A stretch of DNA of 63,392 nucleotides, the filler included, from Olpidium bornovanus S191 (lineage: Eukaryota; Fungi; Olpidiomycota), in assembly GCA_017911155.1 (NCBI GenBank). It is 31 parts of 31 records of this genome, joined end to end, with 100 filler letters (N's around TTAATTAATTAA, not from the genome) between each part and the next. Parts side by side here need not be neighbours in the genome. Positions count along the whole stretch, not along the records: positions 31,316 to 32,651 come from JAEFCI010007249.1; 30 more parts are not named here. The stretch is one strand, 5' to 3'. This document shows positions 30,861 to 32,651 of this stretch, in pieces. Every line of letters begins with the position of its first letter. Within the stretch, counting starts at the first letter, position 1. The translations under genes were made by a program, and so were the position numbers. The notes under the pieces are model-generated. The model was not told the DNA's origin. It saw only the letters and a program-made list of their open reading frames with translations, and did not search any database.

Positions 30861-32362
30861 GGCCCCCGGGTTCGGGGGCCGTCCTGCCCTCAATCCCGCC
30901 TCCGTCTCCGCCCTTCGACCACCTCTCGCCCTTTTGCCCTTCACTCGCCGTCCTTCGCCCGCCGCCCGCCTTCCGTGGCTTCGGTCGACGGGCGGTTCGA
31001 GGGCCGTGCCACAGCACACCCCCCGTACTTTCCGCCCGCGGAAAGTCTTGTCGCGGCGCGTTGTCCTCCACCCCCTGGGCCACCGGGCGGTCGATGCCTG
31101 GAGTACTTGCTGTCTCCAGACAGCCCAGGAGGGAGGAGCCATTGGGCTCGGCCGCAGTCTCGTTGGTTTGGCGGCGCGGGAGGGAGGGGGGGGGGCCTTG
31201 TTCAGACTAGCAAAANNNNNNNNNNNNNNNNNNNNNNNNNNNNNNNNNNNNNNNNNNNNTTAATTAATTAANNNNNNNNNNNNNNNNNNNNNNNNNNNNN
31301 NNNNNNNNNNNNNNNCATGGCGTTTCCACCCTGCCGTCCGGATAACGTCGACAAACGTGGCCTTTTCGTGGGGGACGTTTCTTATGCGTGGCCTCGTGAA
31401 TCATTTTGAAGACGTATTTTTTTCAAACGGGAAAGCTGTAGGAGAACGTGTACCGCGTCTTGGATGCCGCGGGCACGGCACGCGCTTGATCCAGCGGTGA
31501 TACGTAGCAAGTCTGTGGAACAGAAGCGAAACGGCCAGTTCCCCTTTCCCCGCGAAGAACGAAGAAGACCAACAGCAGTAGACTAAAGTCGAGGCGACGA
31601 CGCCGTGGTTTCAAGTCTGAAACTTGAAATCGCGCGGACTTGAATCACTACTGGCGAGTCCGGTGAATGAAGGCTAGTTAGAACCGCGTCAAACAGCGCC
31701 CAAACCGAAACCAAAGGGTAGGGAGGACAGAGCCTGTCGTGCCGCGTCGGGATCACCAAGTTCCCCCACCCCCCTTCCCCCTCCCATTTCCCTCCCTTGG
31801 AACTGCAGCGCACCGCCGTACGGCGTTAGCACGGCATGGCCGTGGACCGAGGGTTTTCTGGCTTTTTCAAACCGCAGAAACCGCGCTGCCCGGGGTTTTG
31901 GCGCCCAACCCCGCGGCTGTGGAAGGGAGCCTGTGCTCCCGGTCCCACCGAAATTGCCCGCCCACACCAGGTAGTAGTGTTGAGGGTAGACCGGTTTGCC
32001 AGGGGCACCACTCACGCCATGCAGTTCTCGGGGGCCCGGAATTCCGCAGGTTCGGAAGAAATTATTTTCCAGGGACGGCGAGGCATTAAGCTATGTTTCC
32101 TTTCATCATTATATTAAGGGTGCGAGCTACGGGGGACACGCTATGCAGCTCAGTGTTGTCTGCTCCGTTTGATGACCGCAGGAGGTCAAGCGAGGGTAAT
32201 AAAGCGGGCCGTGAGAAGACTCCGCATCCGGTATGATACCGGATCCCCCCCCCCCACCCCCAGCTCGGCGTTCGTATAATGCCTGGTGGGTCGTACGGGA
32301 AATAATTACATAAAACAGAATGAAAAACAAAAATAAAAATCAGAAAATAAACAAATGGCGGA

Positions 32363-32651
32363 TTAGTCCCATTTTTCTTCGTCGTCCTCATCGGACTCTG
32401 GATTCGGTGATGCGAGGTTCAAGGGTGGAAGATGAGGTCGGCGGCGGAGGGTGCGAGGGGGGGGGGGCCGAGAATAAGTCGACCCTGTTTTCCGCAACAC
32501 GTATCCTCAAACAACGCGAAAGGCAGGATACATGAAGGCGCTTCTTCCTCCCGCTTACCGCCCTCGCTGTCGCTCATTTCCAGGGCCGCGCGCCTCATCA
32601 GAATGTGCATCACATCGTCCTGTTTCCGGTCGCCCGTCTTTGGTGTGAGCA
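32363..32651 (-). CDS. SCAR/WAVE-family Arp2/3 activator, C-terminal central-acidic region, last 2 exons
   Basis: Exons 32651-32559 and 32397-32363 (GTAAGC...CCAG, phase 1) give KQDDVMHILMRRAALEMSDSEG|ESDEDDEEKWD*. Compare recalled WAVE1 [31 protein letters not shown], with terminal acidic tract and Trp. Confidence 0.82.

Follow-up and report, generated by a model that had tools for sequence, protein, structure and literature searches.

We found, at the 3' end of a gene on the minus strand of the window (the whole stretch of 63,392 nucleotides that was analysed), the coding sequence of what is very likely, judged from its predicted protein, a SCAR/WAVE-type nucleation-promoting factor. The gene is expressed and spliced. 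Its final two coding exons lie on the 1336-base piece at positions 31316-32651, and when they are joined, the reading contains an amphipathic central helix (V-x-x-I-L-x-R-R-x-A-L-E-M), SDSE, an acidic tail and a Trp two residues ahead of the stop codon. The RNA contigs described below show that the owner of this contig expresses a WAVE-type activator of the Arp2/3 complex.

The penultimate coding exon (32559-32651, minus strand), defined by translation and by RNA contigs of the runs X2, X3 and X4, is truncated at the edge of the piece. Read on the minus strand in the frame starting from 32649, it gives LTPKTGDRKQDDVMHILMRRAALEMSDSEG with one extra base, the G at 32559. More specifically, the residues it encodes make up a linker, the central (C) helix DVMHILMRRAALEM and SDSEG, and its last base opens a codon that is split by the intron. 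Next comes an intron of 161 nt in phase 1 (32398-32558, minus strand; GT..AG, GTAAGC...CCAG), with the donor GTAAGC at 32558 and the acceptor CCAG at 32398, the latter closing a pyrimidine-rich stretch. In the last coding stretch (32363-32397, minus strand), defined by translation and by RNA contigs of X2 and X4, AG finishes the split Glu codon and is followed by SDEDDEEKWD and by the stop codon TAA at 32365-32363. The 3' UTR covers at least 32251-32362 (minus strand), as contig 8 of X4 is continuous over 32251-32397 and across the splice. It is A+T-rich directly past the stop codon and then enters a C/G homopolymer tract, and the GC content is 0.34-0.38 across 32266-32415. Considering that other contigs overlap down to about 32020, the 3' UTR may be longer than this minimum. 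Two homopolymer tracts, one of about 11 C and one of about 11 G, lie at 32241-32262 (in the 3' UTR) and at 32452-32467 (in the intron) and make a weak inverted repeat; in the first of them the X2 contig carries one additional A, at 32244.

Logan contigs of X2, X3 and X4 were aligned to the piece, and every aligned segment agreed with the window at 99% or more of its positions. Contigs of X2 (study P1) and of X4 (study P2) join 32397 to 32559, skipping 161 letters, and the skipped segment ends with CT..AC on the plus strand, that is, GT..AG on the minus strand. In each of the three runs, RNA depth fell to zero across 32441-32530; both exons, the 3' UTR and most of the remaining piece were covered. 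Contigs of each of the three runs run unbroken through 32559-32651 and beyond the edge of the piece, and the two contigs that span the splice extend 316 and 155 letters beyond 32651 with no joint, indicating that the helix exon continues outside the piece. The translation of the exons, together with the RNA joint of 32397 to 32559, confirmed the spliced peptide that a sequence-only reading of this DNA had drawn. The same reading had claimed that the ORF track reads through the intron and so hides the C-terminus, and this was borne out: in the mechanical ORF list, an ORF of 64 residues (32419-32613) passes from the helix exon into the intron and reaches a stop at 32419, and the acidic tail falls in a separate ORF in another frame (32363-32500). 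What is recovered is an ordinary SCAR/WAVE-type gene with its intron correctly placed. For annotation, this means that a prokaryote-style ORF track conceals the true C-terminus of such a gene, with the acidic/Trp tail appearing after removal of the 161-nt intron.

Two other gene models were considered and rejected. The first, an unspliced protein ending in ..IFHP, requires an intron sequence that has no RNA cover and gives a reading devoid of the acidic/Trp tail. The second model takes the later AG of CAGAG as its acceptor, which needs a skip of 163 letters and a frame shift, whereas the observed skip is 161.

The identity of the tail was evaluated from its motifs and by homology searches. Every fixed position of the WAVE-type helix D-V-x-x-I-L-x-R-R-x-A-x-E-x followed by S-D-S-E is present in the exon, and the acidic C-terminal region with its near-terminal Trp (SDEDDEEKWD-stop) is joined by RNA to the helix exon. 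When the 30-residue exon was compared with the PDB by phmmer, the sole matches at E<=10 were two WAVE1 sequences, both in the C region; 14 of 23 positions of this alignment are identical, with an E of about 1 that is not significant by itself. The WAVE assignment draws on about 40 residues, as the WAVE homology domain (WHD) and the basic, proline-rich and WH2 parts fall beyond the edge at 32651. No more than 11 residues ahead of the helix are inside the piece, and in relatives the LRKV of the WH2 motif sits 15-45 residues upstream.

Searches were run exon by exon, the last exon, with 11 codons, being below usable query length. With the 30-residue exon as query, an exhaustive phmmer search of 1.84 billion representatives returned none at E<=0.001, a threshold that this query passes only with near-identity. 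A word search with the 76-residue read-through ORF gave no candidate under length limits that exclude full-length kin, and Pfam had no match for the exon, the read-through ORF or six other ORFs of the piece. These Pfam, word-search and exhaustive-search blanks are as expected for a query so short. Looking up the exon in the ESM Atlas gave no usable match, the exact 19-residue peptide was found 0 times in the metagenome scan, and no paper was found that prints a WAVE C-region string. On the piece itself, Rfam gave one match, at chance level, and no tRNAs were detected.

We then used the positions common to the exon and WAVE1, D-V-x-x-I-L-x-R-R-x-A-x-E-x-S-D-S-E, as a motif for a codon-degenerate scan of metagenome contigs. 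The scan returned 41 loci, compared with about 0.05 expected by chance (a rough estimate from information content), and all 41 encode the end of a WH2 motif (G-I-x-L-R-K-V), a linker, the helix and an acidic tract with Trp. Six of them are complete ORFs on transcript-like contigs (L004, L013, L014, L017, L033 and L039); they all start with MP[LV]xKR.. and carry the WAVE homology domain, and no other N-terminus was seen among the six. L014 matched residues 1-185 of WAVE1 at E 3e-34, and each of the six matched the WHD of mouse WASF2, at E values from 1e-33 to 1e-57. In a set of WAVE proteins collected over their whole length, mostly vertebrate, the strict motif was present in 113 of 120. A profile built from 16 tails matched WAVE1 at E 4e-15, and the exon scored 35.8 bits against it (best of 1000 shuffles, at most 6.6), a score that is partly circular since the tails were chosen with the pattern that the exon fits. 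The PDB matches to WAVE1, the motif scan and the WHD in the complete ORFs thus give support to the WAVE-type central helix, SDSE, acidic tract and Trp that had been noticed from the DNA alone.

Four of the loci (L001, L012, L019 and L026) have tails identical to sequences that we take for human WAVE2 and WAVE1; these loci, probably human DNA within environmental data sets, were excluded from every alignment, profile and comparison. The vertebrate-like loci L006, L029, L032 and L037 were excluded from the alignment and the tail profile, but were counted in the identity tally. Word searches were also performed, returning one protein with the VCA of L014 and, with the whole WAVE of Diaphanoeca, mostly vertebrate WASF2 and no fungal WAVE. 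Among the six complete ORFs, which are clear WAVE proteins, local Pfam reports no domain but WH2; as the local Pfam has no WHD model, the blank on this domain is an effect of the library version and not a finding. The precomputed labels of the protein collection for the WAVE family are PF27560 and PF27569.

Since a WH2-C-acidic-Trp end is common to the members of the WASP family (PMC3298513) and the subfamily-defining N-terminus falls outside the piece, the tail could be the CA region of WASH, WASP, WAWH, WAML or WHAMM/JMY with a WAVE-like helix; the C regions compared directly were those of WAVE, WASP and N-WASP. C domains, however, carry subfamily-specific patterns that are usable as markers (Kollmar et al., PMC3298513), the helix of the window fits the motif found in the 113 WAVE proteins, and every complete ORF bearing this motif is a WAVE. 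More specifically, WASP and N-WASP share the WH2-C-acidic-Trp logic and target the same Arp2/3 complex, but N-WASP matched the tail profile in its WH2 repeats alone and not in the C region; at E<=10, no WASP or N-WASP chain in the PDB came up with the exon, and no C region of either with the tail profile, an absence of matches that speaks against WASP. We therefore regard another WASP-family member as very unlikely. It is extremely unlikely that we are looking at a CA module on an unrelated protein or at a decaying gene remnant. The upstream part of the gene lies outside the piece, and CA additions to class-1 myosins and coronins are known in Dikarya (PMC3298513), yet such additions are not known to carry a WAVE-type helix plus SDSE. 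Furthermore, the helix exon runs at least 316 nt further upstream in RNA, and the gene is correctly spliced and expressed in two studies, with its reading frame and stop codon intact.

As a SCAR/WAVE-type tail, the window's sequence can be compared with that of known systems. The VCA of human WAVE1 (WASF1), seen in structures of the WAVE regulatory complex (3P8C, 4N78 and 7USC), shares DV..IL.RR.A.E.SDSE with the window and has, as in the window, an acidic tract and then a Trp near the end. At the positions outside the motif, the window has MH for AT, M for S, AAL for IAV and M for Y, and its acidic tail has no second aromatic residue. The tail of the window is also split by an intron, while no vertebrate-like tail in the scan breaks there. 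Closer likeness was found in choanoflagellate WAVE, represented by Diaphanoeca grandis (EP00040_P004961, here P0001) and by the metatranscriptome locus L014, both full-length and both with the WAVE homology domain. Their C region is identical to that of the window at 15 of 19 positions, including ILMRR and EMSDSEG, and is followed by a short acidic tail with a single Trp. The choanoflagellate tails read GSGSEEDDW.. where the window reads ESDEDDEEKWD, and 19 residues are too few to establish kinship beyond the family. L014 comes from a marine metatranscriptome, its VCA is 76% identical to the Diaphanoeca grandis WAVE, and its WH2 motif is atypical (..FLSQLQAKRTNMKEV) and scores below the Pfam WH2 model.

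The nearest tail is that of L035 (Ga0157372_10472740), from an A+T-rich soil eukaryote, with 16 of 19 positions of the C region identical, among them the whole of ILMRRAALEMSDSE. In this locus the C region follows a WH2 motif and a polyproline region, and the contig stops short of the WHD on one side and just inside the last exon on the other. The locus is A+T-rich, whereas the piece is 55-65% G+C. In L035 a GTAAG donor lies 4 nt past the SDSE codons, in phase 1, as it does in the window, and a listing of donor/acceptor pairs for four loci, with tails of up to 16 residues, showed the same donor position and phase in L022 and L031, there with an intron of 84 nt. The intron site of the window is therefore common to WAVE-tail genes of the A+T-rich soil eukaryote (L035) and of a freshwater eukaryote (L022 and L031). 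The occurrence of one intron site in three genomes whose composition differs greatly speaks for orthology with these WAVE-tail genes, and the shared position provides a small but usable marker for protist WAVE gene models. An intron at this site is missing from the vertebrate-like loci and from several other genomic loci, and many genomic loci are split inside WH2 instead, right before G-I-x-L-R-K-V.

The established mechanism of the WASP/WAVE family suggests how the encoded protein may work. The C helix and the acidic/Trp tail would form the Arp2/3-activating end of a WASP-family activator, and an actin monomer would be brought to it by a WH2 motif that is predicted to be coded directly upstream, past the edge of the piece. 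At rest, Sra1/CYFIP would keep the WH2-C part bound within the WAVE complex of five subunits, with Rac setting it free. Both the delivery of the monomer and the control by Sra1 and Rac are proposed here by analogy with that family mechanism. Phosphorylation at casein kinase 2-type sites tunes the activity of animal WAVE2 and of Dictyostelium SCAR. In the window, three serines (in S-D-S-E, S-E-G-E and S-D-E-D) each match the casein kinase 2 pattern S-x-x-D/E.

We also asked to which organism the gene belongs. Two thirds of the sampled words were found in the run X1 (label A, 2012), the probable source of the assembly. Seven runs of another label, B (the RNA runs X2-X8; two studies, 2022 and 2025), contain parts of the piece at an identity of at least 99%. 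This difference between the labels raises an appreciable, if small, chance that the gene is a true WAVE of a host, a prey, a co-cultured organism or a contaminant, in which case it would be silent on the nominal species and on fungi. The piece is a 1.3-kb fragment with no taxon-fixing content, and the nearest named tails are choanoflagellate and not fungal, in a comparison set without fungal WAVE. On the other hand, among 10.8 million reads sampled from X18, a polyA run with label B, none mapped to the piece, so either the piece is outside the genome of B itself or B is a mixed label. The result of X18 agrees with A being an associate that occurs in some B samples only, and is still compatible with a third organism.

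The meaning of the gene for fungi depends on this owner, and so do the suggestions of the sequence-only reading that the organism may crawl, may use branched actin during host entry and would help to date the loss of WAVE. WAVE has been lost in Dikarya and Mucoromycotina, and WASH is missing from every sequenced fungus (PMC3298513), a point that bears on the tail only if its owner is a fungus. Batrachochytrium and Allomyces keep WASP plus SCAR, a pair that correlates with pseudopods (PMC5461030), and both WASP and SCAR/WAVE are present in Rozella and in the aphelid Paraphelidium (PMC6299283). The initial reading of the DNA had stated that WAVE is kept in chytrids and absent from Dikarya, and that WASP with SCAR tracks pseudopods, in agreement with this literature (PMC5461030, PMC3298513). 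We liken the present gene to the SCAR/WAVE of these zoosporic fungi and relatives (Batrachochytrium, Allomyces, Rozella and Paraphelidium) by gene class, solely from literature reports. If the owner is a zoosporic fungal parasite, the gene fits the retention of WAVE in chytrids, Blastocladiomycota, Rozella and aphelids, and it leaves the known picture, with loss in Mucoromycotina and Dikarya, unchanged. Because WAVE has already been recorded in chytrids, Blastocladiomycota, Rozella and an aphelid (PMC3298513, PMC6299283), a further zoosporic fungus with WAVE adds little to the dating of its loss. There is a slim prospect that the owner is a parasitic early-diverging fungus, or a member of a fungus-like lineage, with no earlier record of SCAR/WAVE and with the gene switched on inside or on its host. 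The activity in or on the host would follow from the RNA with this gene coming from runs labelled as another organism. Such a parasite would add one more lineage to the Holomycota known to retain the machinery for pseudopods or phagocytosis.

Finally, RNA cover was observed on the rest of the piece. The region 31773-32362 is nearly all covered by short contigs of X2-X4 (31813-31965, 31836-32133 and 32020-32289), with the intron remaining uncovered, which points to a long 3' UTR or to overlapping transcripts from both sides. An X2 contig covers 31316-31764 at a depth of 46, about three times that of the WAVE exons, and overruns the left edge of the piece by 868 nt. As no ORF with a family match is found in 31316-31764, the RNA there is probably the UTR of a neighbouring gene. 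The X2 contig shows three A>G differences with respect to the window, at 31353, 31354 and 31500, which are either strain differences or editing.
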